A stretch of DNA of 64,000 nt from IMGVR_UViG_3300044712_001937:62001-126000; one strand, 5' to 3'. Shown: positions 41,144 through 58,942, counted from the first letter of the stretch. Notes: generated by a model from the letters alone, not told the origin. Numbers and translations are program-made.

Positions 41144-41174
41144 TTTGTATTTATAAAAAAAATAATTACATTTG
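41144..41174 (+). promoter_or_regulatory. Bacteroidota sigma-A promoter of tRNA cluster 1
   Basis: TTTG 41144-41147, 19 nt, TACATTTG 41167-41174. Confidence 0.75.
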
Positions 41175-41206
41175 TACCGAATAAGTATAACATAATAAAT
41201 ATTCAA

Positions 41207-41281
41207 ATGAAAAATTTAATACATATCCACCCCCAACCACAACAACATCCACAAATGTTGAATGGGGATAATATGGCTTAA
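41207..41281 (+). CDS. Attenuator leader peptide 1, MKNLIHIHPQPQQHPQMLNGDNMA (His/Pro/Gln-rich)
   Basis: Manual translation; lies between promoter and terminator; contains antiterminator segment TTGAATGGG. Confidence 0.8.
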   Translation: MKNLIHIHPQPQQHPQMLNGDNMA

Positions 41282-41313
41282 ATTTTTTAAAAAAGTTTTT
41301 AAGTTTAACATAT

Positions 41314-41348
41314 AAAAACCCATTCAGAGAAATTTGAATGGGTTTTTT
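41314..41348 (+). terminator. Conditional terminator of attenuator 1
   Basis: AAAAACCCATTCA-GAGAAATT-TGAATGGGTTTTTT. Confidence 0.85.
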
Positions 41349-41375
41349 ATTTTCAGGGATTGGGCGAGTTTAATA

Positions 41376-41386
41376 TGTTCTTTGAA
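41376..41386 (+). promoter_or_regulatory. boxA-like antitermination site
   Basis: TGTTCTTTGAA shortly after the terminator. Confidence 0.55.
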
Positions 41387-41464
41387 TTATCGAAATTGAG
41401 GTTATTTTTTTTATGTTAACTTAATTAATTTCGACATTAATTGTATTTATAATGAAAAATATAT

Positions 41465-42103
41465 ATGAATATTGAAAATTTAAAATTAATAATTGAAAAC
41501 AGTACTTCATTAAGTGAAGTTTGTAAGAAAATGAATATAAATAATAATGGTAACTCATTTAAAAAAATAAAAAAATTTATAAATGATGAAAGTATATCAA
41601 TATCTCATTTTAAGCGAAAATCAAAAAATATTTATAATGTTGATAAATTAAAATTATTAGTAAAAAATTCTACAACATATTCTGAAATATGTAGAGGGTT
41701 TAATATTAAAGAAACTGGTGGAAATATTAAAACAATTAAACAAAAAATTAATGAATCTAATATAGATATATCACATTTTAATGGTAAAGGTTGGAATAAA
41801 GGGAAAAGATATATTAATAATTTTAAAAAAAGTGAATTAAACAAAATATTAGTTGAAAATTCAACATATATTAATACGCATAAACTTAAATTAAGATTAA
41901 TTAAAGAAGGCTTACTTGAGCATAAATGCTATGGAGATAACTGTTGTATTATCAATATGTGGAATAATAAATTAATATCATTACAATTAGACCATATTAA
42001 TGGAAATAGAAGAGATAATAGAATTGAAAATCTTAGATTATTATGTCCTAATTGTCATTCACAAACTGAAACATATGGAGGTAAAAATAACGTAAAAAAA
42101 TAA
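41465..42103 (+). CDS. HNH homing endonuclease inserted ahead of tRNA cluster 1
   Basis: LQLDHINGNRRDNRIENLRLLCPNCHSQTETY; duplicated N-terminal repeat; late motif 41443-41451. Confidence 0.9.
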   Translation: MNIENLKLIIENSTSLSEVCKKMNINNNGNSFKKIKKFINDESISISHFKRKSKNIYNVDKLKLLVKNSTTYSEICRGFNIKETGGNIKTIKQKINESNIDISHFNGKGWNKGKRYINNFKKSELNKILVENSTYINTHKLKLRLIKEGLLEHKCYGDNCCIINMWNNKLISLQLDHINGNRRDNRIENLRLLCPNCHSQTETYGGKNNVKK

Positions 42104-42110
42104 TATATTT

Positions 42111-42185
42111 CTGGGTGTTCCACAGATGGATATATGGGCGTGCCTTGGAAGCACGTGTTCGTGAGTTCGAATCTCACCACTCAGA
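42111..42185 (+). tRNA. tRNA-Pro(UGG)
   Basis: Acceptor CTGGGTG/CACTCAG; CGTGC-CTTGGAA-GCACG; TTCGAAT T-loop. Confidence 0.85.
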
Positions 42186-42200
42186 CTAAATTGTTTTAAT

Positions 42201-42273
42201 GGTGTTTGAAGCATTAAGGTGATGTGCTTGACTGTGAATCAAGAGAAAACGGGTCAGTACCGTTCTTACACCC
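42201..42273 (+). tRNA. tRNA-His(GUG), atypical T-loop
   Basis: CTTGA-CTGTGAA-TCAAG; acceptor has mismatches; T-loop GTCAGTA. Confidence 0.7.
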
Positions 42274-42332
42274 AAATTATCGGTTAATTAACCTATAAAA
42301 TATATTTATAGGCATTTTAAAAGATAAAATTA

Positions 42333-42407
42333 CGGAATGTTGAGGAATTGGTTTCCCTCGCCTACCTTGGACGTAGGAGCATGTCGGTTCGAGTCCGGTC
42401 ATTCCGA
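42333..42407 (+). tRNA. tRNA-Pro(UGG)
   Basis: CGGAATG/CATTCCG; CCTAC-CTTGGAC-GTAGG. Confidence 0.88.
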
Positions 42408-42416
42408 CTATTAAAT

Positions 42417-42492
42417 CGAGTAATTGGGGAGTTGGTCACCCCGCCACATTTGGGATGTGGAGAACTCGCAGGTTCGAATCCTGCTTACTCGA
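42417..42492 (+). tRNA. tRNA-Pro(UGG)
   Basis: CGAGTAA/TTACTCG; CCACA-TTTGGGA-TGTGG. Confidence 0.88.
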
Positions 42493-42494
42493 CT

Positions 42495-42567
42495 GTATTA
42501 GTGGACTGTTGGTAGTCCGTCAAGATTGTGGCTCTTGCTGACGGGGGTTCGATTCCCCTCTAATACC
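42495..42567 (+). tRNA. tRNA-His(GUG)
   Basis: GTATTAG/CTAATAC, C discriminator; CAAGA-TTGTGGC-TCTTG. Confidence 0.85.
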
Positions 42568-42573
42568 CTAAAT

Positions 42574-42657
42574 TGTCCTTTGGTGGAATTGGTTTAAACA
42601 CAACTGTCTTTGAAGCAGTAACCTTCGGGTTTGCAGGTTCGAGTCCTGCAAGGACAA
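42574..42657 (+). tRNA. tRNA with Gln(UUG) anticodon and long variable arm
   Basis: TGTCCTT/AAGGACA; ACTGT-CTTTGAA-GCAGT; variable arm ACC-TTCG-GGT. Confidence 0.85.
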
Positions 42658-42664
42658 CTAAAAT

Positions 42665-42736
42665 TACTCAATAGTGTAATGGCTACCACACAACACTTTG
42701 ACTGTTGTAATTCTGGTTCGAGTCCAGATTGAGTAA
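42665..42736 (+). tRNA. tRNA-Gln(UUG)
   Basis: TACTCAA/TTGAGTA; CAACA-CTTTGAC-TGTTG. Confidence 0.88.
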
Positions 42737-42776
42737 CAATTTAAATAAAATTGCGTATATTACTAAAAAAACAATT

Positions 42777-43198
42777 ATGAATTATAATCTTTTCCTTGAT
42801 GATGTAAGAGAACCTGATGAAGTATTTGGATATACTAATAATCAGCTATATTTAATAGGTTGGAAAATAGTTCGAAATTATGATGAATTCATTAAATGTA
42901 TTTCTGAAAATGGAATTCCTAATGCTATTAGTTTTGACCATGATTTAGGACATGAACATTATAAAATACAAACCAATATTAGCTATAATCAATTTAAAGA
43001 AAAAACTGGTTTTCATTGCGCAAAATGGTTGATTGATTATTGTATTGTATTGATAATAAATTAGAACTTCCAAACACTATTTTAATACATTCATGGAATA
43101 AAGTGGGTAGTGCAAACATTAAGTCGTTATTTGATACATATAATAAAGTAAAAAATATTAACACTCCTAACAATTATCCACCAATACCTTATTCTTAA
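42777..43198 (+). pseudogene. Cyclic-phosphate-processing receiver-like protein, frameshifted by a TATTG x3 tract
   Basis: LFLDDVREP...ISFDHDLG...TGFHCAKWL; removing one TATTG unit (43038-43052) restores IDNKLELPNTILIHSWNKVGSANIKSLF. Confidence 0.7.
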
Positions 43199-43261
43199 GA
43201 ATAGAATAAATTCATATCGGATTTTTATAATATTTATTGTATTTATTATAAATTTCTGATT

Positions 43262-43756
43262 ATGGAATATAAAAATAATAAACAAAAACTTTTTGAAGTT
43301 ATCGCAAGACTTGATAAAACATTCAAACCTAAATTGAATGAAAGTAATGATAAATCAAACAAAAAGGGATTCCATACCAATATTGAAGAAGATACTATTA
43401 ATAATAATAACTTTAGAAAAGTATTATATACTGGTCAAAATTTACAATTAGTTTTAATGGCTTTAAAACCCGGTGAAGAAATTGGTGAAGAAACTCATCC
43501 AAATATTGACCAATTTTTTAGAATTGATGCTGGTAATGGTAAATGTATTATTAATGATAATGAATATAATTTAAAAAATGGTGATTGTATTATAGTTCCC
43601 GCAGGTTCTAAACATAATATAATTAATAATGGTAAGAAAGAATTAAAATTATATACCATATATTCACCTCCACATCATAAAGATGGTATTATCTTTAAAA
43701 CCAAAGACGAAGCTGAAAATAGTAAAGAAAAATTTAATGGTAAAACAACAGAATAA
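43262..43756 (+). CDS. Cupin-domain protein with KQKLFEV leader
   Basis: LKPGEEIGEETHPNIDQFFRIDAG...IVPAGSKHNIIN...LYTIYSPPHH; late motif 43239-43247. Confidence 0.85.
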   Translation: MEYKNNKQKLFEVIARLDKTFKPKLNESNDKSNKKGFHTNIEEDTINNNNFRKVLYTGQNLQLVLMALKPGEEIGEETHPNIDQFFRIDAGNGKCIINDNEYNLKNGDCIIVPAGSKHNIINNGKKELKLYTIYSPPHHKDGIIFKTKDEAENSKEKFNGKTTE

Positions 43757-43784
43757 ATAATATTAAAAATAATAAATTAGCAAT

Positions 43785-44057
43785 ATGAAAGACAGTAAAC
43801 AAAGATTATTTGAAGTAATGGGAAGACTTGATAAAACTTTTAAACCCAAAAATGTTCTTAATGAATGGAATTTCGATAAGAAAAAAGATGATGATTCTGA
43901 AGAAGAAAAAAAAGAAGGTGAAGAAACTCAAGAACATGAAGAATCTGAAACACCTGCTGAAGAAAAAAAAGAACATAAAGAAGATAAAGAATTAGACGAA
44001 GCTGATGAAGTAAAACCTAAAATCCCTGTAAATGCTATTGCAAAGGTGGGTAAATAA
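43785..44057 (+). CDS. Small acidic protein with KQRLFEVMG leader
   Basis: MKDSKQRLFEVMGRLDKTFKPKNVLNE followed by an E/K/D-rich tail. Confidence 0.65.
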   Translation: MKDSKQRLFEVMGRLDKTFKPKNVLNEWNFDKKKDDDSEEEKKEGEETQEHEESETPAEEKKEHKEDKELDEADEVKPKIPVNAIAKVGK

Positions 44058-44085
44058 ATTTTTTTTAAAAAAAAGTTAAAAATAA

Positions 44086-44123
44086 TTTGTTTTTAATTGA
44101 AACTTTTTTACCTTTGTATCGTA
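44086..44123 (+). promoter_or_regulatory. Overlapping sigma-A and ECF-type promoters of tRNA cluster 2
   Basis: TTTG 44086-44089 + TACCTTTG 44109-44116; TGAAAC 44098-44103 + N16 + CGTA 44120-44123. Confidence 0.75.
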
Positions 44124-44159
44124 TTTAGTTTAAAACGCTATAACAATTAAAAAATAGAA

Positions 44160-44252
44160 ATGATGAAAAAAGTACTCGACATATTAGTAGCAGAAACATT
44201 AGTTGCCTTATTATGGGCAGTTGATGAAGATATGCTATGTTCAGTCGGGTAA
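44160..44252 (+). CDS. Attenuator leader peptide 2, MMKKVLDILVAETLVALLWAVDEDMLCSVG (V/L/A/D/E/W-rich)
   Basis: Manual translation; 3' end GTTCAGTCGGGT is a perfect 12-nt complement of the terminator 5' arm. Confidence 0.82.
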   Translation: MMKKVLDILVAETLVALLWAVDEDMLCSVG

Positions 44253-44280
44253 GTTTTATTACGATATAAAACAAGTTTTT

Positions 44281-44318
44281 AAAAAAACCCGACTGAACTA
44301 AAATCAGTCGGGTTTTTT
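44281..44318 (+). terminator. Conditional terminator of attenuator 2
   Basis: A7-CCCGACTGA-ACTAAAA-TCAGTCGGG-T6. Confidence 0.9.
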
Positions 44319-44325
44319 GTTTTTA

Positions 44326-44338
44326 TGTTCTTTGACAT
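44326..44338 (+). promoter_or_regulatory. boxA-like antitermination site
   Basis: TGTTCTTTGACAT between the terminator and the first tRNA. Confidence 0.65.
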
Positions 44339-44349
44339 GCTGGAATTTT

Positions 44350-44422
44350 CGAGGTCGTGGTGTAATGGTCTGCATAACACACTGTCACTGTGTCGGTTGG
44401 GGTTCGAGTCCCCCGGTCTCGG
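44350..44422 (+). tRNA. tRNA-Asp(GUC)
   Basis: CGAGGTC/GGTCTCG; ACACA-CTGTCAC-TGTGT; G discriminator. Confidence 0.85.
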
Positions 44423-44486
44423 CAATATCCTATCGGAAGGTAGGAGAAACTAAATTATTTAAATCCGGAATAGAATAATTTAGAAA

Positions 44487-44561
44487 GGACGTATAGTTTA
44501 TATGGGTGTGAATGCCACCGAGATGGGGTGGTGGTTGCTGGTTCAAATCCAGTTACGTCTG
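44487..44561 (+). tRNA. Atypical tRNA, nominal Ile(GAU), noncanonical anticodon loop
   Basis: GGACGTA/TACGTCT; CCACC-GAGATGG-GGTGG (no U33). Confidence 0.55.
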
Positions 44562-44567
44562 CAAAAT

Positions 44568-44643
44568 ATCACCATAGGGGAGTCTGGTCGTCCCTGCTTG
44601 CCTGTCACGCAAGAGAACACGGGTTCAAATCCCGTTGGTGGTG
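44568..44643 (+). tRNA. tRNA-Asp(GUC)
   Basis: ATCACCA/TGGTGGT; CTTGC-CTGTCAC-GCAAG. Confidence 0.85.
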
Positions 44644-44790
44644 CTAATACTTTACTGTCGAATTATATTAAGTTGATATAATTTATGAAGATAAGCGGAT
44701 TGGTGTAATAAACACATCTACCTTAAATAAGTAGAAACCTGTAACATGTGAAAGTTATCATCCGCAACAAGAAAGTAAAGTATTTATTAT

Positions 44791-44874
44791 CGTGCATTAT
44801 GCAAGCGGTCAAAGCGGCAAGTCCTTCAAACTTGTATCGAAAGATTTCGAGGGGTTCGAATCCCCCATGCATGA
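44791..44874 (+). tRNA. tRNA with Glu(UUC) anticodon and long variable arm
   Basis: CGTGCAT/ATGCATG; CAAGT-CCTTCAA-ACTTG (C33); variable arm ATC-GAAA-GAT. Confidence 0.75.
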
Positions 44875-45141
44875 CTTTAGTTATTTTCATTCAAAAGTGT
44901 AATACAATGCACTTTTGAATGAAAACACAATCATTAGTATCATATATGAGACTTTCAACAATAAATGTTGAATATTTCTATAAAATTTTAAGTTATTGTG
45001 GAAAATATACAACAAATTGAATAAAAGTTATTTATTTTCTACAATATATAATGTATGAAATAACCAACATTAGTAAAACGATGAAATTATATTCTAAACT
45101 AATAACCACTTAGCTTATAAGCATATTTTAAAAATTACGTA

Positions 45142-45426
45142 ATGTGTGAAATAACAAACATTATTTATATGGAAAACGAAATTTTAAAAAAAGAAATCCT
45201 TAAACTCCGGGAAGAAAATGAAGACCTTAAAAGTAAATTAATTGATTTAACTTTTGAACAAAATTATAGCATTGAAAAAGAATTAGCTGAAATTGTTCGA
45301 GAATTATATTCTGGTGTTTGTGAAGAATTAAAAAATAAAAAAAGTGAACTTACTAAAAAACAAATTTTAGAAAATATTAGAAATAATCTACAAGAATTTG
45401 CAAAAAACTATAAGTTTAAATTATAA
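45142..45426 (+). CDS. Hypothetical coiled-coil protein
   Basis: 94-aa ORF; probable start at MENEIL. Confidence 0.55.
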   Translation: MCEITNIIYMENEILKKEILKLREENEDLKSKLIDLTFEQNYSIEKELAEIVRELYSGVCEELKNKKSELTKKQILENIRNNLQEFAKNYKFKL

Positions 45427-45430
45427 AAAT

Positions 45431-45502
45431 GCTCGGTTGGTAAAGTGGCTAATACGTCTGACTTTCTATCAGGAGTCACGGGTTCGATTCCCGTACCGAG
45501 TA
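45431..45502 (+). tRNA. tRNA-Glu(UUC)
   Basis: GCTCGGT/ACCGAGT; TCTGA-CTTTCTA-TCAGG. Confidence 0.85.
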
Positions 45503-45576
45503 CAATTAGGTGTCTAAAGCATTAAAGACTTAAATTCGGTAAAAAGTTAAATAATTAAGCCATGCCTAATTAAATC

Positions 45577-45648
45577 AGTCTCTTAGCGTAGCGGAAGCGC
45601 ATCTGCCTTACATGCAGAGGGTCATAGGTTCGAATCCTATAGGGACTA
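45577..45648 (+). tRNA. tRNA-Val(UAC)
   Basis: AGTCTCT/AGGGACT; TCTGC-CTTACAT-GCAGA. Confidence 0.88.
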
Positions 45649-45766
45649 CAAATGTCTATCATAGCTGGGTAAAATCCCTTAAAGGAATACTGGAGTAACG
45701 ATAACCTAAGTGAAGTGGTATTATGCGAGATAGTTATAATGAAAAGTTGGTCACTCAGTAATTATA

Positions 45767-45841
45767 GGGTGAAAATGGTGTAAGTATGGGAGCACATCTG
45801 CATGAAAGCAGCAGGACGAAGTTCGAATCTTTAACACTCCA
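45767..45841 (+). pseudogene. Degenerate tRNA-like element
   Basis: D-like and TTCGAAT arms present, but 6-nt anticodon loop (ATGAAA) and poor acceptor pairing. Confidence 0.5.
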
Positions 45842-45846
45842 CAAAT

Positions 45847-45931
45847 TGGAAAATGGTGTAATGGCTAAACATCCCACTCTTACAAAGTGGAGACGAGAAG
45901 TATAATCCGAGTTCGAATCTCGGTTTTCCAA
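45847..45931 (+). tRNA. tRNA with Val(UAC) anticodon and long variable region
   Basis: TGGAAAA/TTTTCCA; CCACT-CTTACAA-AGTGG; 16-nt variable region. Confidence 0.8.
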
Positions 45932-45939
45932 CATAAAAT

Positions 45940-46020
45940 GTCCTCTTGGTGGAACGGTAGACACGATAGTTTTAGAAACTATTGCTGAAAGGTGTGAGAG
46001 TTCAAGTCTCTCAGAGGATA
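45940..46020 (+). tRNA. tRNA-Leu(UAG)
   Basis: GTCCTCT/AGAGGAT; ATAGT-TTTAGAA-ACTAT; class II arm. Confidence 0.88.
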
Positions 46021-46066
46021 CTAATATTTTATAATAATTAAAATAAACTTAATTCTTGCAAAAACA

Positions 46067-46732
46067 CTATTTATTTTTTATTATGTTAACAATAACGTTT
46101 AAATATTTTTTTGATGTTTGTTCTTTGAAATATTTTTGTTGTGATGTGTCAATAATGCATAATTCAATCCCTTGTTCTAAACAAGCTTGAAATTTTCTAT
46201 TATCATTATTTTGAATTTGTTGAAGTTTATTTTCGCCAAATATTGGTTCATAATGAAATAAACCATTTAACTCAAAAGCAAGTTTAAGTGAAGGAATATA
46301 AATATCTAATTCAGAATTTATTATATCTTTATTATTAAATAATATTTCTAAATCAGGATATAATAATTTTAATTGTCCTTCAAGATAAATTTCAAGTTTA
46401 GACCTACGATTACCTTTTGTTTTATGTGTATTATTATAAATTGCAGCACATGATTGTGAACAAAAATGATTGTTTGATTTTTTTATTTCACTATTAGGTT
46501 TTATAATTTCAATACCACAATTAATACAAGTAAAAATTGTACTATTATTGAAATATAGTGAACGACATTTTTTTGTACAAAAATTACCACGATTATATTT
46601 ATTTTCTTTTATATAATGTTTTATTCTCTTTTTTTGACATTGGAAAATATTATCACAATAGTGACATTTTAAATTCAAAAAATCATTTGATTTAGCTGTA
46701 TTAAATTCTTCTTTGGTAAATAATGGAATCAT
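46067..46732 (-). CDS. Zinc-finger plus PD-(D/E)XK/Vsr-like endonuclease inserted antisense in tRNA cluster 2 (start revised to MIPLFT)
   Basis: CxxC repeats; ELDIYIPSLKLAFELNGLFHY; late motif on the minus strand at 46755-46747. Confidence 0.75.
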   Translation of the reverse strand: MIPLFTKEEFNTAKSNDFLNLKCHYCDNIFQCQKKRIKHYIKENKYNRGNFCTKKCRSLYFNNSTIFTCINCGIEIIKPNSEIKKSNNHFCSQSCAAIYNNTHKTKGNRRSKLEIYLEGQLKLLYPDLEILFNNKDIINSELDIYIPSLKLAFELNGLFHYEPIFGENKLQQIQNNDNRKFQACLEQGIELCIIDTSQQKYFKEQTSKKYLNVIVNIIKNK

Positions 46733-46820
46733 AAGACTTAATTTATAATAAATACTATAAATTTTCATTTTCGATATAGTTTTTCGGGACAAAGTAAAAG
46801 AATTAATTAATAATATATAT

Positions 46821-46907
46821 GGCTTTGTGGCGAAATTGGCAGTACGCAACAGACTTAAAATCTGTGGTTCAGTAATGGACGTGTCGGTTCAAGTCCGACC
46901 AGAGCTA
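46821..46907 (+). tRNA. tRNA-Leu(UAA)
   Basis: GGCTTTG/CAGAGCT; ACAGA-CTTAAAA-TCTGT. Confidence 0.9.
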
Positions 46908-46975
46908 CGCTATTGAGTTTTACACTTTTAGATTTCCGTGAAGTTAGTTAATAACTGAGAAAGAAAAAGTGATAT

Positions 46976-47051
46976 GGGGTATGGGACTGCTAGGGTTGGT
47001 CATCTCGCTTGCACCGAGAAAATCAGGACGATTCGAATTCGTCATGCTCCA
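46976..47051 (+). tRNA. tRNA-Ala(UGC)
   Basis: GGGGTAT/ATGCTCC with G3:U70; TCTCG-CTTGCAC-CGAGA. Confidence 0.88.
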
Positions 47052-47112
47052 CTGAGACAGACTGTTAGAATTTTATAGAACCTGTTGCTGGGTAGCGTAA
47101 AAATTCGAATAT

Positions 47113-47187
47113 GGTTCTGTAGCCCAATTGGTAGAGGCATCAGATTTAAATTCTGTATAGGTGTGGGTTCGACTCCCACCATCCCTA
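47113..47187 (+). pseudogene. tRNA-like gene, nominal Leu(UAA), mismatched acceptor stem
   Basis: Good D and T arms, CAGA-TTTAAAT-TCTG; GGTTCTG does not pair well with CATCCCT. Confidence 0.55.
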
Positions 47188-47194
47188 CTAACAT

Positions 47195-47265
47195 ACATCT
47201 GTCGTCTAATGGTAAGATATCGGTTTCCAACTCCGAGGATAAGGTTTCGATTACTTTCAGGTGTG
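47195..47265 (+). tRNA. tRNA-Trp(CCA)
   Basis: ACATCTG/CAGGTGT, G discriminator; loop TTCCAAC. Confidence 0.75.
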
Positions 47266-47283
47266 CTAATTAATTATAAATAT

Positions 47284-47550
47284 ATGAGTAGTGAAGATGG
47301 TAGGTATCATATAACTGATATCAAAACAGGTAGAAAATTTTTAGTTGAACCAATTGGTAATCCCCATGTTAATTGGGGTGATGTAAACCCTGCAACAAAA
47401 AAATTAGAAGGGGATTATGGTGATAAATATCGAGGTTCAATCGATGAAAAAAATTCAATAATTACTGAACAAAATGGATTTAAAAATATTATTGTAGGAG
47501 AAATTGGTGAATCTCCAGTAGATTTGATGAATAAAATTTTAAATTCTTAA
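47284..47550 (+). CDS. Conserved phage hypothetical protein (start revised to MSSEDG)
   Basis: The upstream part of the track ORF overlaps tRNAs; ATG at 47284. Confidence 0.65.
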   Translation: MSSEDGRYHITDIKTGRKFLVEPIGNPHVNWGDVNPATKKLEGDYGDKYRGSIDEKNSIITEQNGFKNIIVGEIGESPVDLMNKILNS

Positions 47551-52784: not shown

Positions 52785-52855
52785 TGCGATATCGTCTAAT
52801 GGTAGGACACCTCTCTCATAAGGAGTGAATTGCAGTTCGATTCTGCATATCGCAA
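52785..52855 (+). tRNA. tRNA-Met/Ile2(CAU)
   Basis: TGCGATA/TATCGCA; loop CTCATAA. Confidence 0.82.
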
Positions 52856-52879
52856 CAACATTCCAGCATGTTAAAACAA

Positions 52880-52905
52880 AAAAACCCGGATGATACCGGG
52901 TTTTT
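52880..52905. terminator. Bidirectional terminator
   Basis: AAAAACCCGG-ATGATA-CCGGGTTTTT. Confidence 0.85.
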
Positions 52906-53338
52906 AAAATTTAACGTTACATGTTTTTTCTTTAAAATCGAATTCTAATTCGGAGATATATAACGAACTACCTTTAACTAATGTTGGATTAGCAAGTATA
53001 AATTTCCATTCAAAATCATTTATATTTTTTTGTATATTTTCTTGTACAATTTCATCAGTTTGTTTATCTGTATAATTAACATAAAAAATTCCTTCAACTT
53101 TTTCAACATCAACAATAAAATTTTCAATACCCATTTGGTTAAGCCAAAAGCTTACTTTCCAAGTAACATTAATATCACTACCTACAATATCTGAATCATA
53201 TTGAGAAGAGAAACTACTAAAGCCATAAAAATATGAATTTTGTAATTTTTCTGTAAATGTGAATCTATCATCAGTTAAGGCATAACTTTCATTTAGATAA
53301 TTTTGAATTTCTTCTTTAATAATATGTTGTAAACTCAT
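52904..53338 (-). CDS. Putative internal head protein (IIKEE...LNE leader)
   Basis: MSLQHIIKEEIQNYLNES; late motif 53355-53363. Confidence 0.55.
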   Translation of the reverse strand: MSLQHIIKEEIQNYLNESYALTDDRFTFTEKLQNSYFYGFSSFSSQYDSDIVGSDINVTWKVSFWLNQMGIENFIVDVEKVEGIFYVNYTDKQTDEIVQENIQKNINDFEWKFILANPTLVKGSSLYISELEFDFKEKTCNVKF

Positions 53339-53414
53339 TATATTAATTTTTAAATATAAATACTTTGATTATTATTAAAATTAATTTAATATATTTGTCG
53401 ATATTAATAACATT

Positions 53415-53714
53415 ATGACAAAATTTGCGTATAAGTTATTCAGGAAGAAAAAATGTGGTGATATTACGTCATTATTTATCAATAATACAAGAGTCTTACC
53501 ATTAAATACTTGGATTGAAGCTAAAGGATACCCAACGCCCGGTTTTAAATTTAGACCATTTTGGCATTGTACAGAGCAACCAATTGCACCACATTTAAGT
53601 ATGAAAGGTAGAGTTTGGTTAAAAGTAGAAATGGAAGATTTTGAAGAATTAATAAGACCTGAAAATCAAGGTGGAAAATGGTTTTTAGCTAAAAAAATAA
53701 AAATACTAATATGA
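53415..53714 (+). CDS. Hypothetical protein
   Basis: 99-aa ORF after a TATATTTG promoter element at 53390-53397. Confidence 0.6.
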   Translation: MTKFAYKLFRKKKCGDITSLFINNTRVLPLNTWIEAKGYPTPGFKFRPFWHCTEQPIAPHLSMKGRVWLKVEMEDFEELIRPENQGGKWFLAKKIKILI

Positions 53715-54730
53715 TTAAGAAAGAAGAAATTACAGTAAACAAGTCGCATTGGGAAAATATGAATAGTGATGAATTGGAAATATTTGCAAATAAAATATTT
53801 CAATACTATCGTGAAAATGGTTTTCCATATTTTCCTACTGACATTGAAAGTAGGATGAAAGATTTTAACACATTAAAGAAATTTGATTTTTCAAATATTA
53901 TTCAAGATGATGTTGTTAATCAAACAATGCATGGTTTAGGTCTGGCTTGGTCATATTTTCCACATGCTTTTGAAGTGAAATGTGGTAATAAAATGACTCC
54001 TTATGAAGCATTTATAGATGATGAAATATTTATGAGAGTAATACGGAGAAGATTAAAAATGGGTACATATATTAGTGATTCTGGAATTAGAAAAATGTTG
54101 AAATTATTTAGTAATGTTCAAAGTGTTTCCAATTTTAGACCTACTGCAGCAGCAGCTATATATAACACTTTTGCAAAAAACGGTGTGGTTTGGGATATGT
54201 CTGGTGGTTGGGGTGGTAGATTACTTGGTGCAATTGTAAGTAATGTTGGAAAATATATTGCAACTGAACCATCTACTAAAACATACGAAGGATTAAGAAA
54301 ATTAGGTGAAGATTTTGGAAAAGAAAATAAATGGGAAATATATCCTGTTGGTAGTGAAGATTTTTTACCAATTGCAAATTCTTTAGATTTGTGTTTTACA
54401 TCTCCACCATATTTTAACCAAGAAAAATATGCAGATGAGCCAACTCAAAGTTATATTAAATATCCTACTCGTGAAGAATGGATTGAAGGATTTTTAATTA
54501 AAACATTTGAGAATTGTCATTGGGGATTAAAGGATGATGGTTTGATGATTATTAATATTGCTGATGTAATAGGTAGAAATAGTATAAAATTAGAAGAAGA
54601 TACTATCAAATCTGCTGAAAAAGCAGGATTTAAATTAAGGAAAAAATTCTATCTTGCATTATCGAATGTTAATATGAGAAATAAAGAAAATAAACATAAA
54701 TTTGAACCGATGTTCTTATTTACTAAATAA
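53711..54730 (+). CDS. SAM-dependent DNA amino-methyltransferase-like protein
   Basis: WDMSGGWGGRLLGA (motif I) and FTSPPYF (motif IV). Confidence 0.82.
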   Translation: MIKKEEITVNKSHWENMNSDELEIFANKIFQYYRENGFPYFPTDIESRMKDFNTLKKFDFSNIIQDDVVNQTMHGLGLAWSYFPHAFEVKCGNKMTPYEAFIDDEIFMRVIRRRLKMGTYISDSGIRKMLKLFSNVQSVSNFRPTAAAAIYNTFAKNGVVWDMSGGWGGRLLGAIVSNVGKYIATEPSTKTYEGLRKLGEDFGKENKWEIYPVGSEDFLPIANSLDLCFTSPPYFNQEKYADEPTQSYIKYPTREEWIEGFLIKTFENCHWGLKDDGLMIINIADVIGRNSIKLEEDTIKSAEKAGFKLRKKFYLALSNVNMRNKENKHKFEPMFLFTK

Positions 54731-54788
54731 ATTATGAAAATTTTGGGGTAATTTTACATTACTTGGTATTTATAATAAAATATTGATT

Positions 54789-55559
54789 ATGAGTATTGGT
54801 ATATATAAAATTACAAATCCTAAAGGAAAAATTTATATTGGACAAAGTATAAATCTTGAAAAAAGAATTAATGATTATAAATATTTGAATTATTCAAAAA
54901 ATCAATATAAATTATATAATTCATTTCAAAAATATGGTATTGATTCACATATTTTTGAAATAATAGAAATTTGTGAAATTCATAATTTAAACAATAGAGA
55001 AAGATATTGGCAGGATTTTTATGATGTTTTACATAATGGTCTTAATTTAATATTAACGACCAATGATAATTGTTTACCAATTGTTTCTAAAGAAACTAAA
55101 GAAAAAATAAAAAAAAGTCTTAATAATTATTTTATTAAATTAGGTACTTTAAAAAGAAATGAAATTTATGGAAAAAGCAGTCGTAAACGAAAAGGATGTA
55201 TAGGATTAAAAGGACGTGTTATTTCTGATGAAACTAAAAGAAAAATAAGTATTGCAAAAAAAGGACATATAGTTTCTGACGATACTAAACTAAAAATTAA
55301 AAACAAAATGATTGGTAGAGAAATTTCATGGAGTAAAAAAATTGGTGATAGTAATCGTGGAAAAAGTAAAAATAAAGGAAAACACTGTAAACCAATAATT
55401 CAATTAAATAAAAATGGAGAAATTTTAAATAAATGGAAAAGTATTTCTCAAGCATCAATTGAAACAAAAATTCCATTTAATTCAATATCTAATTGTTTAA
55501 CTGGTTATTGTAAAACATCAAGAGGTTTTATTTGGAAATATGATAATAATATAGAATAA
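54789..55559 (+). CDS. GIY-YIG homing endonuclease with NUMOD repeats
   Basis: MSIGIYKITNPKGKIYIGQS; NUMOD3-like SDETKRKIS; GFIWKY; late motif 54766-54774. Confidence 0.9.
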   Translation: MSIGIYKITNPKGKIYIGQSINLEKRINDYKYLNYSKNQYKLYNSFQKYGIDSHIFEIIEICEIHNLNNRERYWQDFYDVLHNGLNLILTTNDNCLPIVSKETKEKIKKSLNNYFIKLGTLKRNEIYGKSSRKRKGCIGLKGRVISDETKRKISIAKKGHIVSDDTKLKIKNKMIGREISWSKKIGDSNRGKSKNKGKHCKPIIQLNKNGEILNKWKSISQASIETKIPFNSISNCLTGYCKTSRGFIWKYDNNIE

Positions 55560-56608
55560 TGAATAAAGAATTAAATATATTGCATGAACAAGGTTTATTG
55601 CAAAAACAAGTTCATCCTAATTATAAATTAATTATTTGGAATTATACTCCAAAAGTTAGTTATGAAAAATTATGGAAAACTAATGATTTATTATTAAAAT
55701 GTCGAGGTTTAGTGACTGATTTTCAAGGAAATATAATTGCTAATTGTATTCCTAAATTCTTTAACTATGAAGAATTAAATTATAATGATATTCCTAACGA
55801 ACCTTTTGAATTTACAGATAAAATGGATGGTTCTTATATTAATTTTTTTAATTATAATGGTAATTGGATTTTTTCCTCACGAGGTTCATTTTCATCAGAA
55901 CAAGCTATATTAGCTAATAAAATATTTAATGAAAAATATTTTAATAAAGTAATATTAAATCCAGAATATAATTATATTATGGAATTAATAGGAATTGATA
56001 ACAGAATTGTTATTTATTACCCTAATAATGATTTAGTTTTATTAACTTGTTTTTCAAAAGAAAATAAAGAAATTAATATATATTCTGAAGAATTTAATGG
56101 GTTTAATAAGGTTAAAAAATATGATGGAATAATTGATTATAAAAAAATAAAAGCATTAATTTCTGACGATACTGAAGGATATGTTATTCGTTTTAAAAAT
56201 GGATTTAGAATGAAAATTAAAGGAGATGAATATTGTAGATTACATTCGATAATAACTAATGTTTCGAATATTGTAATTTGGAAACATATGAAAGATGGTT
56301 TACCTTTTGAAGAATTGCTTGATAGAGTTCCGGATGAATTTTATAATTGGGTACTTAAAACTAAAAATGAATTAGAAGATAATTATTATGCCATTGAATG
56401 TCCATTATTAAAAGAATTTGTAGAAATATATTATTTTAATGGTAGTTATAATCGCACAAAATTTGCTAAAGCAGTTTTAGAATCTAAATCTAAACATAAA
56501 TCTATATTATTCTCCTTATTTGATAATAAAAAATATAATCAAGTAATTTGGAAAGCAATTAGACCTACATTTAGTAAGCCATTTCGAGATGGTTATGATA
56601 CGGATTAA
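55559..56608 (+). CDS. T4 Rnl1-family RNA ligase
   Basis: CRGLV...IPKFFNY, KMDGS (motif I), ELIG, EGYVIRF, MKIKGDEY. Confidence 0.85.
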   Translation: MNKELNILHEQGLLQKQVHPNYKLIIWNYTPKVSYEKLWKTNDLLLKCRGLVTDFQGNIIANCIPKFFNYEELNYNDIPNEPFEFTDKMDGSYINFFNYNGNWIFSSRGSFSSEQAILANKIFNEKYFNKVILNPEYNYIMELIGIDNRIVIYYPNNDLVLLTCFSKENKEINIYSEEFNGFNKVKKYDGIIDYKKIKALISDDTEGYVIRFKNGFRMKIKGDEYCRLHSIITNVSNIVIWKHMKDGLPFEELLDRVPDEFYNWVLKTKNELEDNYYAIECPLLKEFVEIYYFNGSYNRTKFAKAVLESKSKHKSILFSLFDNKKYNQVIWKAIRPTFSKPFRDGYDTD

Positions 56609-56613
56609 TTGAT

Positions 56614-56642
56614 AAAAGCGAAGGTTTCTTCGCTTTTTTTTT
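56614..56642 (+). terminator. Intrinsic terminator
   Basis: AAAAGCGAAG-GTTT-CTTCGC-T run. Confidence 0.85.
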
Positions 56643-56667
56643 GTATTTATAATAAAACAATATAGAT

Positions 56668-57474
56668 ATGAAAATAATTAAATTTTTGAAGAAAATTTTT
56701 CCGTTCTTCTTTAAGAAGAAAAAAATAATTAATGTAAAATTTGGATGGAAAAAAGATGATTATGACCCAAGAGATTTTAAATTTAAAATTACAACTCCCC
56801 ATGAATTACCTCCAATGGTTGACCTTAGAAACTTATGTCCACCAGTGTATAATCAAGGAAGTGTTGGAAGTTGTACAGCTAATGCACTTGGTGCTGCATT
56901 TCAATTCGAACAAATAAAACAAAAAAAAGAAGATTTTATTCCTTCAAGATTATTCATTTATTATAATGAAAGAGCTATGGAAGGTACTATTAATGAAGAT
57001 GCTGGTGCAATGATTCGTGATGGTATTAAAACAATGGTTAAAGATGGTGTATGTCCTGAAACTATGTGGGAATACATTGAAAATAGATTTAGAACTAAAC
57101 CAAGTGATAATTGTTATAAAGCTGCACTTGATAATCAAGTATTAGAATATTTAAGAATATCACCGTCTTTATATGAAATTAAACATTGTTTAAATGAAGG
57201 TTACCCAATATCTTTCGGATTTTTAATATATCCTTCTTTTATGGATGGTGATGTTGCTCGTACTGGTATAGCTAATATGCCAAAAAATAATGAGAATTAT
57301 ATTGGTGGTCATGCAGTATTAGCTGTCGGATATGATGATAGTAAAGAAGCATTAATTGTTAGGAATAGCTGGGGTGAAAATTGGGGAATTAATGGATATT
57401 TTTATTTACCTTATGGTTATATTACAACTCCCGAATTATCAAATGATTTCTGGACAATTAGATTGGTGGAATAA
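56668..57474 (+). CDS. Papain-like (C1) cysteine peptidase
   Basis: NQGSVGSCTANA, GGHAVLAVGYDD, VRNSWG; late motif 56643-56651. Confidence 0.92.
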   Translation: MKIIKFLKKIFPFFFKKKKIINVKFGWKKDDYDPRDFKFKITTPHELPPMVDLRNLCPPVYNQGSVGSCTANALGAAFQFEQIKQKKEDFIPSRLFIYYNERAMEGTINEDAGAMIRDGIKTMVKDGVCPETMWEYIENRFRTKPSDNCYKAALDNQVLEYLRISPSLYEIKHCLNEGYPISFGFLIYPSFMDGDVARTGIANMPKNNENYIGGHAVLAVGYDDSKEALIVRNSWGENWGINGYFYLPYGYITTPELSNDFWTIRLVE

Positions 57475-57490
57475 AATAAATTAAAAATAT

Positions 57491-57533
57491 TGTAACTTTT
57501 TTTTGGAAGTCTCGTATTTATATCATATATTTG
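57491..57533 (+). promoter_or_regulatory. Overlapping ECF-type and sigma-A promoters of tRNA cluster 3
   Basis: TGTAAC 57491-57496 + N16 + CGTA 57513-57516; TTTG 57502-57505 + TATATTTG 57526-57533. Confidence 0.75.
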
Positions 57534-57619
57534 CAGAGTGAATTTAATGAATTCTGTATTTGACTGTTTTGAATGGCGAGGGTCATTAAATTTAATAACA
57601 AAATAAACAATATAAAGAA

Positions 57620-57709
57620 ATGAGAACATTTGGTACATATTATTACGGTAAAAAATCCTATAAACACCTTATAGGATTCGGGAATTCTATGTCCAAAATG
57701 CAAAGATAA
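57620..57709 (+). CDS. Attenuator leader peptide 3, MRTFGTYYYGKKSYKHLIGFGNSMSKMQR (Tyr/Lys-rich)
   Basis: Manual translation; contains GGATTCGGG complementary to the terminator 5' arm and an 8-bp protector hairpin. Confidence 0.8.
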   Translation: MRTFGTYYYGKKSYKHLIGFGNSMSKMQR

Positions 57710-57736
57710 CAGCAATGATTTTTGCGTAATGAACTG

Positions 57737-57766
57737 AAACCCGAATTCGAAAGATTCGGGTTTTTT
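57737..57766 (+). terminator. Conditional terminator of attenuator 3
   Basis: AAACCCGAAT-TCGAAAG-ATTCGGG-T6. Confidence 0.88.
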
Positions 57767-57780
57767 GTTTTTATATAAAT

Positions 57781-57863
57781 TGTGTAGATGGTAAATTGGC
57801 TAAATCAGAGGCTTGTAACACCTTCGTCATTCGACTATGTAGGTTCGATTCCTACCTGCACAA
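57781..57863 (+). tRNA. tRNA-Tyr(GUA)
   Basis: TGTGTAG/CTGCACA; loop TTGTAAC; class II arm. Confidence 0.8.
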
Positions 57864-57870
57864 CAAATTT

Positions 57871-57943
57871 GACTTCGTGGCGCAATTGGTAGCGCAATAG
57901 GCTTTTAACCTATGGGTTGGGGATTCGACTTCCCCCGGAGTCA
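57871..57943 (+). tRNA. tRNA-Lys(UUU)
   Basis: GACTTCG/CGGAGTC; ATAGG-CTTTTAA-CCTAT. Confidence 0.88.
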
Positions 57944-58003
57944 CGGTAGGAAGACTGTTATAATTTCATAGTTCCAAGTAATGGAAAGCATAGAAATTAA
58001 ATT

Positions 58004-58087
58004 GGGAGTGCGCTAACGCTGGAGAGTTAGGTTTGTCTGTAAAACAAATGTCTTTCGGCTGAGTGGGTTCGAATCCCACTACTCCCA
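58004..58087 (+). tRNA. tRNA-Tyr(GUA)
   Basis: GGGAGTG/TACTCCC; TTTGT-CTGTAAA-ACAAA. Confidence 0.88.
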
Positions 58088-58153
58088 CAAATTTAATATT
58101 AAAATAGGTGTATTATACCTATGTTTAATAGTATTTATATTAAATTTAATATT

Positions 58154-58549
58154 ATGTTTGAAAATTGTAAAAATTCAAAAAAACAAGGTGATTTAGGATT
58201 AGGAAAAGCAATTGGATGGTTAACAGAATGTGGTTATACTGTTTCTATACCATTAACTGATTCACAAGATTATGATTTGATTGTTGATATGGATAATAAA
58301 TTAAATAAAGTTCAAGTTAAAACAACCAGATATAAAAATAAAAATGGAATTTTTTGTGTTAATTTATCAGTTAAAGGAGGCAATCAAAGTAGTAATACAA
58401 TAAAAAAATTTGATGCTAATTTTACTGATTATGTTTATGTTTATACATCGAATAATGAAATGTATTTTATTCCGTCATGTGAAATAAAAACAAAAAATAA
58501 TTTAAATATTGGTAAATTATTTTCAAAATATAAAATAATGACTTCGTAA
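58154..58549 (+). CDS. PD-(D/E)XK homing-endonuclease-like protein within tRNA cluster 3 (start revised)
   Basis: KKQGDLG...PLTDSQDYDLIVD...KVQVKT; GTATTTATA at 58131-58139. Confidence 0.82.
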   Translation: MFENCKNSKKQGDLGLGKAIGWLTECGYTVSIPLTDSQDYDLIVDMDNKLNKVQVKTTRYKNKNGIFCVNLSVKGGNQSSNTIKKFDANFTDYVYVYTSNNEMYFIPSCEIKTKNNLNIGKLFSKYKIMTS

Positions 58550-58612
58550 CTTAATTGGTAGAGTACCACTCTCTTAAAGTGGGAGTTGTGGGTTCAAATC
58601 CCACCGAAGTCA
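58540..58612 (+). tRNA. tRNA-Lys(CUU)
   Basis: GACTTCG/CGAAGTC; CCACT-CTCTTAA-AGTGG. Confidence 0.9.
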
Positions 58613-58696
58613 CTAACTGAACTTAGCAAATGGAGTTCTGTCAACCATCAAGCATGATTAAATCGTAGGAGGGGGAGAGTTTAAAATTTGCAATAT

Positions 58697-58783
58697 GACC
58701 TTGTAGCTCAACTGGATAGAGCTTCTGGCTTTTAACCAGAAGGGAGCGTAATGCCGTTGTGGGTTCGAGTCCCACCGGGGTCA
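58697..58783 (+). tRNA. tRNA with Lys(UUU) anticodon and long variable arm
   Basis: GACCTTG/CGGGGTC; TCTGG-CTTTTAA-CCAGA; 18-nt variable region. Confidence 0.85.
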
Positions 58784-58790
58784 CAAAATT

Positions 58791-58942
58791 GGATTGTCTT
58801 TCGGTGTGGTGAACCGAGCCGTCCCGATAAGGACGGTGCTCAAAAGGATATGGTTAATAAAGAAGATTTCTCGCCTATGTATGATAGATGCGCATAATAA
58901 CATAGGATGGTGCTTCGCTTGGTTCGAATCCCCTACAGTCCA
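58791..58942 (+). ncRNA. tRNA-Ile-like RNA with about 75-nt insertion in the variable region
   Basis: Acceptor GGATTGT/ACAGTCC, D arm, CGTCC-CGATAA-GGACG, TTCGAAT loop. Confidence 0.55.

Follow-up and report, generated by a model that had tools for sequence, protein, structure and literature searches.

Putative leader-peptide attenuators in front of tRNA gene clusters in giant phages of Bacteroidota

We found that a family of giant phages of Bacteroidota carries, in front of its tRNA gene clusters, a very short ORF rich in the amino acids of the tRNAs that follow, together with an intrinsic terminator. This is the classic layout of a ribosome-sensing attenuator, but here it would control the tRNA genes themselves, for which we found no precedent in the papers we could search. 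Based on sequence and comparison alone, we consider it likely that each cassette is a ribosome-mediated (leader-peptide) transcription attenuator that gates a phage tRNA array.

Three cassettes and their parts

We analyzed a window of 64,000 nucleotides (IMGVR_UViG_3300044712_001937:62001-126000), which is part of a 365-kb phage contig. The original prediction described three cassettes with a Bacteroidota promoter, a 24-30 codon ORF, an intrinsic terminator, and a tRNA cluster, and all these elements were confirmed (41144-42737, 44086-47814, and 57502-58784). The features, all on the + strand, are the following:

41097-41129 (+): hairpin plus T-run upstream of the leader-1 promoter, which probably insulates the cassette from upstream transcription; a homologous hairpin sits at the same place in relatives
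41144-41174 (+): promoter of cassette 1, Bacteroidota type (TTTG, 19 nt, TAcaTTTG)
41207-41281 (+): leader ORF 1, 24 codons plus TAA; control run H6-Q16 (41222-41254), with 10 of 11 residues His, Pro, or Gln
41258-41266 (+): region 2 of leader 1 (TTGAATGGG), which copies the terminator 3' arm and pairs with the 5' arm (antiterminator) or with the CCCC of the control run
41314-41347 (+): intrinsic terminator 1 (15-bp stem, 4-nt loop, T-tract)
41377-41388 (+): boxA-like element after terminator 1
41465-42103 (+): HNH homing-type endonuclease gene inserted between attenuator 1 and its tRNAs
42111-42737 (+): tRNA cluster 1 (Pro, His, Pro, Pro, His, Gln, Gln)
44086-44116 (+): promoter of cassette 2 (TTTG, 19 nt, TAccTTTG)
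44160-44252 (+): leader ORF 2, 30 codons plus TAA; control run V5-D24 (44172-44231); region 1 is GTACTCGAC at 44172-44180
44239-44250 (+): region 2 of leader 2 (GTTCAGTCGGGT), 12/12 complementary to the terminator 5' arm and directly followed by the stop codon
44282-44318 (+): intrinsic terminator 2 (15-bp stem, 7-nt loop, T-tract)
44327-44345 (+): boxA-like element GTTCTTTGACATGCTGGAA
44350-47814 (+): tRNA cluster 2 (Asp, an odd tRNA-like element, Asp, Glu, Glu, Val, Val, Leu, Leu, Ala, a tRNA seen by Rfam only, Trp, Trp), with inserted ORFs
49977-50351 (+): boxA-like element (49977-49988) followed by a phage tmRNA gene (49992-50351), which may lie within the leader-2 transcription unit
51639-52900 (+): tRNAs Leu, Leu, and Met(CAT) without a leader of their own, followed by the first + strand terminator after 44318 (52885-52900)
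57502-57533 (+): promoter of cassette 3 (TTTG, 20 nt, TAtaTTTG)
57620-57709 (+): leader ORF 3, 29 codons plus TAA; control run Y7-K15 (57638-57664), with 7 of 9 residues Tyr or Lys; region 1 is AATCCTATAA at 57654-57663
57669-57683 (+): region 2 of leader 3, where TTATAGGATT pairs with region 1 and GGATTCGGGA pairs with the terminator 5' arm
57736-57764 (+): intrinsic terminator 3 (12-bp stem, 5-nt loop, T-tract)
57781-58784 (+): tRNA cluster 3 (Tyr, Lys, Tyr, Lys, Lys), with a PD-(D/E)XK nuclease gene inserted at 58121-58549

The second His of cluster 1 (42202-42273) was found only by Rfam or relaxed ARAGORN. The region holds 15 terminator-like sites, against 5.7 +/- 2.5 in shuffled sequences. 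In each cassette, a segment near the ORF end repeats the terminator 3' arm: TTGAATGGG at 41258 and 41334, TCAGTCGGGT at 44241 and 44304, and GATTCGGG at 57675 and 57753. For leader 2, 44239-44250 and 44287-44298 present 12 nt of perfect complementarity. The original prediction missed the HNH gene between terminator 1 and its tRNAs; relatives mostly have the first tRNA 9-60 nt after the terminator, and a few carry inserts as the window does. It also called the cassettes unrelated, which is not clearly the case, since leaders 2, 3, and 4 (the fourth found in relatives, see below) share CCCGA...TCGGG terminators.

The full promoter motif (TTTG-N19/20-TAnnTTTG) lies upstream of 37/48 leaders, against 8/581 background tiles of the window. 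Terminator hairpins have energies of -8 to -22 kcal/mol with a T-tract, and the first tRNA is usually only 9-50 nt after the T-tract, which leaves no room for another promoter.

Leader composition and conservation

Each leader is enriched in the amino acids of its own cluster. Leader 1 has 10/23 residues in {P,H,Q} (background 7.7%, binomial P=3.5e-6), leader 2 has 20/29 in {D,E,V,L,A,W} (background 31%, P=3e-5), and leader 3 has 8/28 in {Y,K} (background 14%, P=0.035). Leaders 1 and 2 rank first among the 200 small ORFs of the window and leader 3 is in the top 5.5%, whereas all off-diagonal combinations were non-significant. However, leaders also hold residues with no tRNA in the cluster (I, T, M, and K in leader 2; G, S, T, and F in leader 3). 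Moreover, the codon-anticodon match highlighted in the original prediction (25/38 exact Watson-Crick) is not above what the phage's own codon usage gives (20.8 expected, P=0.11).

The architecture is conserved in relatives at 40-57% protein identity, where nearly every cluster start has the same intact leader and terminator. Leaders are present at 32/36, 46/51, and 33/37 cluster starts, also in relatives whose neighboring protein is only 39-57% identical, and the misses are outgroup loci or failures of our own classifier. Relatives carry a fourth leader (I/S/T/N/G/F/C/R) before the matching tRNAs, so the four leaders cover about 19 amino acids; Met, whose tRNA sits in the fourth cluster, has no control codon in that leader. 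Across 83 distinct leader/cluster pairs, the own cluster scored 0.447 against 0.220 +/- 0.020 for clusters permuted among pairs, and 0 of 5000 permutations reached the observed value.

The variation among relatives presents signs of translation. ATG is invariant in 56/56 aligned leaders, and control codons vary at the third position only; for example, one Pro column reads CCC6/CCA4/CCG3/CCT1. Replacements stay inside the amino-acid set: leader-2 cores have 0 Gly, Pro, or Cys in 754 residues, although GGN is one mutation from GAN, GTN, and GCN. The peptide tail, in contrast, changes frame and amino acid (W to R) while the RNA pairing is kept.

An alternative is that the attenuators are real but sense general translation status –whether ribosomes are coupled to the polymerase at all– with the composition match as a historical or mutational by-product. 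Within-class co-variation of leader and tRNA content is weak (P=0.026, 0.05, and 0.25; at codon level P=0.31, 0.006, and 0.73), and phages with reduced tRNA sets, such as L270 (L numbers are our labels for the phages compared), keep full leaders. The lack of a codon-anticodon match above codon bias and the model below, in which any stall in the first two thirds of the ORF opens the antiterminator, also fit this reading. However, we consider it unlikely, since four different leaders each match their own cluster and not the others, and replacements are confined to the set. Besides, there is one gain event: tRNA-Arg(ACG) occurs in cluster 1 only in L058 and L069, and only these two carry a CGC Arg codon in the leader-1 core (2/2 against 0/12).

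A ribosome-independent mechanism, in which tRNA anticodons pair directly with the codon run of the leader RNA in a T-box-like manner, would also fit tRNA genes regulated by a leader that holds their codons next to a terminator/antiterminator pair. It seems very unlikely: there was no T-box or other Rfam match at E<=1, the start codon is invariant, the stop is placed at region 2 in leaders 1 and 2, variation has three-base periodicity, and one leader would have to bind 3 to 8 different tRNAs.

Alternative pairings and the proposed switch

The antiterminator pairing is supported by energies and compensatory changes. Duplex energy between the ORF tail and the terminator 5' arm is -9 to -18 kcal/mol, with z of -3 to -6 against shuffles. 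In the 3x3 matrix of the window, the diagonal is -13.3, -18.5, and -11.6, and off-diagonal values are -5.3 to -8.6. Among relatives, GAATGG/CCATTC occurs in 21 cases against GAACGG/CCGTTC in 3, with no discordant pair. Further compensatory changes are GTCGAGA/TCTCGAC in L253, GAGACTG or GGACTG with CCCAGTC in L071 and L077, and AAGACTGG with CCGGTCTT in L264.

We modeled ribosome positions on the nascent transcript, and a stall on control codons gave an antiterminator probability of 0.80-0.89. For leader 1 it was 0.24 with no ribosome or with the ribosome at the stop, and for leader 2 it was 0.43 at the stop, although at equilibrium the leader-2 antiterminator also forms without any ribosome (0.81). 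The picture is clean for leaders 1 and 2, where the stop lies 12 nt and 1-2 nt after region 2, respectively, and less so for leaders 3 and 4. In the latter the stop lies between regions 2 and 3, 14-30 nt beyond region 2, and our footprint model still gives 0.7-0.9 antiterminator with the ribosome at the stop; only a ribosome on region 2, or steric hindrance inside the loop, would give termination. At equilibrium the complete transcript always folds into the terminator, so the switch must be kinetic, as in trp.

In the mechanism we favor, host RNA polymerase starts at the Bacteroidota-type promoter and transcribes the short ORF, whose translation, like the stall-dependent read-through, is inferred. 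If the control codons are decoded quickly, the ribosome runs on over, or just past, region 2, the terminator hairpin (regions 3:4) forms, and transcription stops 9-50 nt before the first tRNA. If decoding is slow because the matching aminoacyl-tRNAs are scarce, the ribosome stalls on region 1, region 2 stays free and pairs with the terminator 5' arm (2:3 antiterminator), and the polymerase reads into the tRNA genes. The products would be the scarce tRNAs themselves, so the loop would be a negative-feedback supply controller. Not every tRNA is gated; Leu-Leu-Met and the tmRNA have no leader. What depletes the tRNAs could be phage-driven host shut-off, codon demand, or host anticodon nucleases; the anticodon-nuclease or starvation trigger of the original prediction remains an inference, and making more tRNA would not relieve stalling caused by amino-acid starvation.

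A boxA element after many of the terminators probably loads NusB/NusE, which would let read-through polymerases resist Rho in the long untranslated arrays. The element is 10/12 identical to E. coli rrn boxA (sequence derived from PMC3177189) and identical to the element upstream of 23S rRNA in Bacteroidota. The 19-mer occurs in at least 120 genome contigs, most of them titled as Bacteroidota, and in 6/6 checked it lies 30-110 nt upstream of 23S rRNA. This bears on another possibility, that the ORF plus terminator units are independent small genes (a peptide or a small RNA) and the arrays are expressed from another start, for instance at the GTTCTTTGACAT element. A conserved element does lie between many terminators and the first tRNA, leader 2 looks like a small hydrophobic helix with a charged N-terminus, and terminated leader RNAs act in trans in other bacteria (PMC6614838). 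We find this unlikely. The element is the rRNA-spacer boxA, not a promoter-like site with fixed -33 spacing, and it is absent from many leader-1 and leader-3 cassettes, where the tRNA starts 9-17 nt after the T-tract. Peptide tails are not conserved while RNA pairings are, and the amino-acid match and the region 2 copy of the terminator arm would be left unexplained.

Comparison with known systems

T-box riboswitches also make a terminator/antiterminator decision that depends on the state of a specific tRNA, but they bind uncharged tRNA directly, have no ORF, and occur mainly in Firmicutes. Large phage tRNA arrays are seen as compensation for host tRNA loss or as counter-defense, as may be the case for T4 and T5 tRNAs against anticodon nucleases; another example concerns Septu cleaving tRNA-Tyr and a homing endonuclease amplifying tRNA loci (PMC13096335). 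The arrays here are likewise interspersed with homing endonucleases, with an Rnl1-like RNA ligase nearby, but no demand-sensing control of such arrays has been described in the papers we could search.

With rrn-type boxA and NusB-NusE antitermination (PMC3177189, PMC4807359), many of the phage cassettes share the boxA sequence, which here sits in phage tRNA and tmRNA units, downstream of an attenuator. The pheST (pheM leader) attenuator of E. coli appears close in that a leader peptide senses charged tRNA and controls a component of the translation apparatus for the same amino acid. Its target is a synthetase protein operon and a single amino acid is sensed, whereas here the targets are the tRNAs themselves and sensing would be multiplexed.

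Finally, the leader-peptide attenuators of enterobacterial amino-acid operons (trp, his, leu, pheA, and the multivalent thr –Thr+Ile– and ilvGMEDA –Leu+Val+Ile–) generally present a promoter, a short ORF with a run of control codons, regions 1-4 with alternative 1:2, 2:3, and 3:4 pairings, an intrinsic terminator, and a stop codon near region 2. There is no sequence similarity to the Rfam leader families, none of which matched at E<=1 anywhere in 40000-60000. The phage element differs in that it is in a phage of Bacteroidota, three to eight amino acids would be sensed per leader, and the genes controlled are tRNA genes rather than biosynthetic enzymes, so the product would act directly on the sensor.

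tRNA clusters and their leaders

ARAGORN found 25 tRNA genes and a tmRNA, all on the + strand between 42111 and 58784, and Rfam added three more tRNA-like genes, one of which (42202-42273) is a second tRNA-His. The tRNAs fall into four groups:

42111-42737 (+), Pro, His, Pro, Pro, His, Gln, Gln
44350-47814 (+), Asp, Asp, Glu, Glu, Val, Val, Leu, Leu, Ala, Trp, Trp
51639-52856 (+), Leu, Leu, Met
57781-58784 (+), Tyr, Lys, Tyr, Lys, Lys

The first, second and fourth groups are each preceded by the same three elements:

41144-41174, 44086-44116 and 57502-57533, promoters of the Bacteroidota type, TTTG-N19/20-TAnnTTTG
41207-41281, 44160-44252 and 57620-57709, short ATG ORFs (leaders 1, 2 and 3) ending just upstream of the terminators
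41314-41347, 44282-44318 and 57736-57764, strong intrinsic terminators

The original prediction, that a segment near each ORF end repeats the terminator 3' arm, was confirmed: the repeats are exact, and part of each ORF end is a copy of the 3' arm, so it is complementary to the 5' arm. Besides, a hairpin plus T-run at 41097-41129, just upstream of the leader-1 promoter, is conserved in relatives and probably shields the cassette from upstream transcription.

Other genes and elements lie in or near the arrays:

41465-42103, 54783-55559, 58121-58549 and 46067-46849 (-), HNH, GIY-YIG and PD-(D/E)XK homing-type nuclease genes and a zinc-finger ORF; the GIY-YIG gene sits about 1.9 kb from the nearest tRNA, and the HNH gene separates attenuator 1 from its tRNAs
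55559-56608, an Rnl1-like RNA ligase (phrog_562, E=1e-59)
49992-50351 (+), a phage tmRNA
44487-44561, 47113-47187 and 58791-58943, three tRNA-like genes that ARAGORN rejects or cannot name: one an odd anticodon-loop element between the two Asp tRNAs, also unnamed at the same place in relatives, one seen by Rfam only, and one with an insert of about 56 nt
42574-42658, 44791-44875, 45847-45932, 47731-47814 and 58697-58784 (+), second copies of 84-88 nt for Gln, Glu, Val, Trp and Lys, each of which also has a tRNA of normal length

In the Lys copy (58697-58784), the only one read by eye, the extra bases form a long variable region, which is unusual for these amino acids and is unexplained. No + strand terminator was detected between the leader-2 terminator and 52885 (44318-52900). 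Thus, one unit may run 8.6 kb through tRNAs, ORFs, the tmRNA and Leu-Leu-Met(CAT). Leader-2 cores contain Met and a conserved ATA Ile codon, so the CAT tRNA could be Met or a lysidine Ile tRNA.

The amino-acid match was specific to each leader's own cluster. Leaders 1 and 2 were the most extreme of the 200 small ORFs of the window for their set, and all six off-diagonal combinations were non-significant.

Amino-acid composition of each leader against its own tRNA cluster
Leader 1: 10/23 residues in {P,H,Q}; background 7.7%; binomial P 3.5e-6
Leader 2: 20/29 residues in {D,E,V,L,A,W}; background 31%; binomial P 3e-5
Leader 3: 8/28 residues in {Y,K}, 7 of 9 in the core; background 14%; binomial P 0.035

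However, the claim in the original prediction that codons mostly match the anticodons does not hold as extra evidence. We found an exact Watson-Crick anticodon in the own cluster for 25 of 38 control codons, but the codon usage of the phage alone predicts 20.8 (P=0.11).

Conservation of the leaders in relatives

The window lies on IMG/VR contig 3300044712_001937, of 364,702 bp. Annotated phages (INPHARED) hold no relative of the region beyond tRNA and HNH fragments. Three protein-anchored scans of IMG/VR brought in about 100 loci (designated here by L numbers), many from contigs of 320-365 kb. In relatives whose flanking proteins are 39-57% identical, the same three leader classes recur in front of the same kinds of cluster. 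To avoid ascertainment bias, we counted from the tRNA side: a leader plus terminator of the right class lies upstream of 32/36 Pro/His/Gln cluster starts, 46/51 Asp cluster starts and 33/37 Lys/Tyr cluster starts. The misses are three outgroup loci without any such cassettes (L023, L026, L281), cases that our regular expressions failed to classify, and one unresolved locus (L266). Among the tRNAs of relatives, a CTA (amber suppressor) tRNA follows the Lys tRNAs in L077 (~13980-14100) and another is in L286, whereas tRNA-Leu with the unusual anticodon AAG is common in cluster 2.

Relatives also carry a fourth leader with the invariant core SRNGNGIFC, made almost only of I, S, T, N, G, F, C and R (L003:18950-19125, L004:11181-11380, L005:18619-18788, and L080, L084, L090-L092, L099, L101 and L103). 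A terminator follows it, and then tRNAs Cys, Asn, Ile, Ser, Phe, Gly, Thr, Met and Arg. The four sets do not overlap and together cover about 19 of the 20 amino acids (Met has a tRNA in the fourth cluster but no control codon). By pattern search with a degenerate motif that did find it in relatives, this fourth cassette was not found in the window, in the 3.5 kb beyond it or in the window's own contig.

Several features suggest that the ORFs are read as codons while their ends act as RNA. The ATG is invariant in all aligned leaders (14, 16, 15 and 11 sequences). Control positions vary at the third base only: one Pro column reads CCC6/CCA4/CCG3/CCT1, and Gln columns mix CAA and CAG. Amino-acid replacements stay inside the set, Q/H/P in leader 1 and V/A/L/E/D in leader 2. 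Moreover, in 754 core residues of 33 distinct leader-2 sequences there is no Gly, Pro or Cys, although GGN is one step from GAN, GTN and GCN. We also considered leader 2 as a membrane peptide, but rejected this as the main reading because Asp and Glu sit inside the 'helix', E/V/A interchange freely, and Gly, Phe, Ser and Thr are rare. Downstream of the control run the peptide is not conserved. In leader 3 the reading frame over the conserved RNA segment GAATCGGGA differs between relatives, and in leader 1 the W of EWG becomes R exactly where the paired base of the terminator changes.

When comparing phages, the link between leader and cluster across classes is very strong. A fraction of 0.447 of leader residues have a tRNA in their own cluster, against 0.220 +/- 0.020 when clusters are permuted among the 83 pairs, and 0 of 5000 permutations reach the observed value. 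Since the pairs are phylogenetically related, this mainly says that four classes are each matched. Within classes the link is weak, with P=0.026, 0.05 and 0.25 at the amino-acid level and 0.31, 0.006 and 0.73 at the codon level, where permuting clusters within a class was significant only for leader 2. The clearest event is a gain: tRNA-Arg(ACG) sits in cluster 1 only in L058 and L069, and only those two leaders have an Arg codon (CGC, read by ACG/ICG) inside the P/Q/H core (2/2 against 0/12), although it may be a single event. Losses do not track. The relative L270 (IMGVR_UViG_3300049436_000052) has only six tRNAs in the fetched locus (His, Gln | Leu, Asp, Glu | Lys) but keeps leaders of almost full composition, and only Val is lost from both the leader-2 core and the cluster. 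Leaders keep His, Tyr or Val codons where no such tRNA was detected, but ARAGORN misses some tRNAs and the losses are uncertain.

Alternative pairing, ribosome position and the boxA-like element

In 91 distinct leaders, the best duplex between ORF tail and terminator 5' arm averages -12 to -13 kcal/mol for classes 1-3, similar to the terminator hairpins themselves, and z is -3 to -6 against shuffled tails. In the window, duplex energies between each ORF tail and the three terminator 5' arms are -13.3, -18.5 and -11.6 kcal/mol on the diagonal and -5.3 to -8.6 off it. Compensatory changes were observed in leaders 1-3. Leader 1 has GAATGG with CCATTC in 21 cases and GAACGG with CCGTTC in 3, with none discordant. 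Leader 2 of L253 has GTCGAGA with TCTCGAC instead of GTCGGG with CCCGAC, and leader 2 of L077 has ATGCTGG with CCAGCA. Leader 3 of L071, L077 and L264 has a different terminator (CCCAGTCTTA or CCCGGTCTTA), with GAGACTG, GGACTG or AAGACTGG in the ORF. A 1:2 pairing is also present: CTCGAC in codons 6-7 of leader 2 pairs with GTCGGG, which explains why Leu6 is CTC in 13/17 although TTA is the usual Leu codon, and AATCCTATAA pairs with TTATAGGATT in leader 3.

Equilibrium folding of the complete leader with a masked ribosome footprint always gave the terminator, so the switch must be kinetic, as in trp. Since attenuators act co-transcriptionally, we replaced this test with folding of the transcript as it exists before the 3' arm is made, with a 28-nt footprint masked at each codon.

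Modelled probability that the terminator 5' arm is held by the ORF tail
Leader 1: stall on control codons 0.80; no ribosome 0.24; ribosome at stop 0.24
Leader 2: stall on control codons 0.89; no ribosome 0.81; ribosome at stop 0.43
Leader 3: stall on control codons 0.89; no ribosome 0.61; ribosome at stop 0.73
Leader 4: stall on control codons 0.86; no ribosome 0.90; ribosome at stop 0.91

For leaders 3 and 4 the probability falls to 0.16-0.22 when the ribosome lies on region 2 (the pairing segment of the ORF end). In these two leaders the stop codon lies between regions 2 and 3, and a ribosome there would sit inside the loop that the antiterminator has to close. Our model does not capture that steric effect, so the geometry is unproven for these two classes.

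The full promoter motif lies within 110 nt upstream of 37/48 leaders, against 8/581 window tiles, and the -7 box alone is present in 46/48. The first tRNA usually starts 9-50 nt after the T-tract, so transcription of the arrays must pass the terminator. Cassette 1 of the window is an exception only because the HNH endonuclease gene has been inserted there.

A conserved element, GTTCTTTGACATGYTGGAA, follows many terminators (nearly all of class 2) and also precedes the tmRNA. In the window, the boxA-like element lies after attenuator terminators, inside the array and 4 nt before the tmRNA:

41377-41388, 44327-44345, 46120-46131 and 49977-49988, boxA-like element (TGTTCTTTGACA)

A scan of one genome per species hit at least 120 genome contigs, most of them titled as Bacteroidota, and in all six loci checked the element lies in the 16S-23S spacer, 30-110 nt upstream of 23S rRNA. 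Its core, TGTTCTTTGACA, matches E. coli rrn boxA at 10 of 12 positions, and the G at position 9 is as in Aquifex boxA (sequences derived from PMC3177189). We considered whether GTTCTTTGACAT could be a second promoter. This was rejected, since it has no fixed spacing to a -33 box, it occurs inside arrays and before the tmRNA, and it is the rRNA spacer boxA of Bacteroidota. We infer that it is a boxA that equips read-through polymerases for the long untranslated arrays, and it also points to a Bacteroidota host.

Proposed mechanism and known attenuators

The attenuator reading is supported as far as sequence analysis can go. It builds on what sequence and comparison show, namely the layout, the match of leader to cluster, the conservation as ORFs, the covarying alternative helices, and a host-type promoter and boxA. 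Translation of the ORFs, stall-dependent read-through, negative feedback by the tRNAs produced, Nus factor loading at boxA and the cause of the tRNA shortage are inferences.

The Rnl1-like RNA ligase and the tmRNA lie close to the gated tRNA clusters, suggesting tRNA repair and ribosome rescue functions, and homing-type nucleases lie among the tRNAs. This neighbourhood fits a phage that manages tRNA damage, but it does not show that defence is the trigger. A more far-reaching possibility, which the evidence leaves open but which we consider doubtful, is that the four leaders together form a complete four-channel meter of decoding capacity. With it, a giant phage would detect during infection which host tRNAs are failing, for example after cleavage by host anticodon nucleases, and switch on exactly the matching replacement tRNA array, with an rRNA-type boxA carrying the polymerase through the array. 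That would be an inducible, self-limiting counter-defence built from a classic attenuator.

Leader-peptide attenuation is a textbook mechanism, but its known targets are amino-acid biosynthesis and a few synthetase genes. Here the same logic appears to control tRNA genes, which closes the loop directly, as the sensor reads the product. Full-text searches of an incomplete literature collection, lacking most subscription journals, found no report of leader-peptide control of tRNA genes in phages or in cells. If confirmed, it would be the first demand-sensing control of tRNA supply by a virus, and it would give a rationale for how phages with dozens of tRNA genes avoid making them when they are not needed. 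It would also make testable why large phages carry tRNAs (codon demand, host shut-off, or escape from tRNA-cleaving defences), because the leaders report which shortage the phage expects. Moreover, the cassettes would be compact natural parts for building sensors of decoding capacity for chosen amino acids in Bacteroidota.

In the Rfam search the system matched no described leader family and no T-box. As proposed, it works like the enterobacterial leader-peptide attenuators, including the multivalent thr and ilv leaders, and pheST seems to be the nearest case where a translation component is the target.
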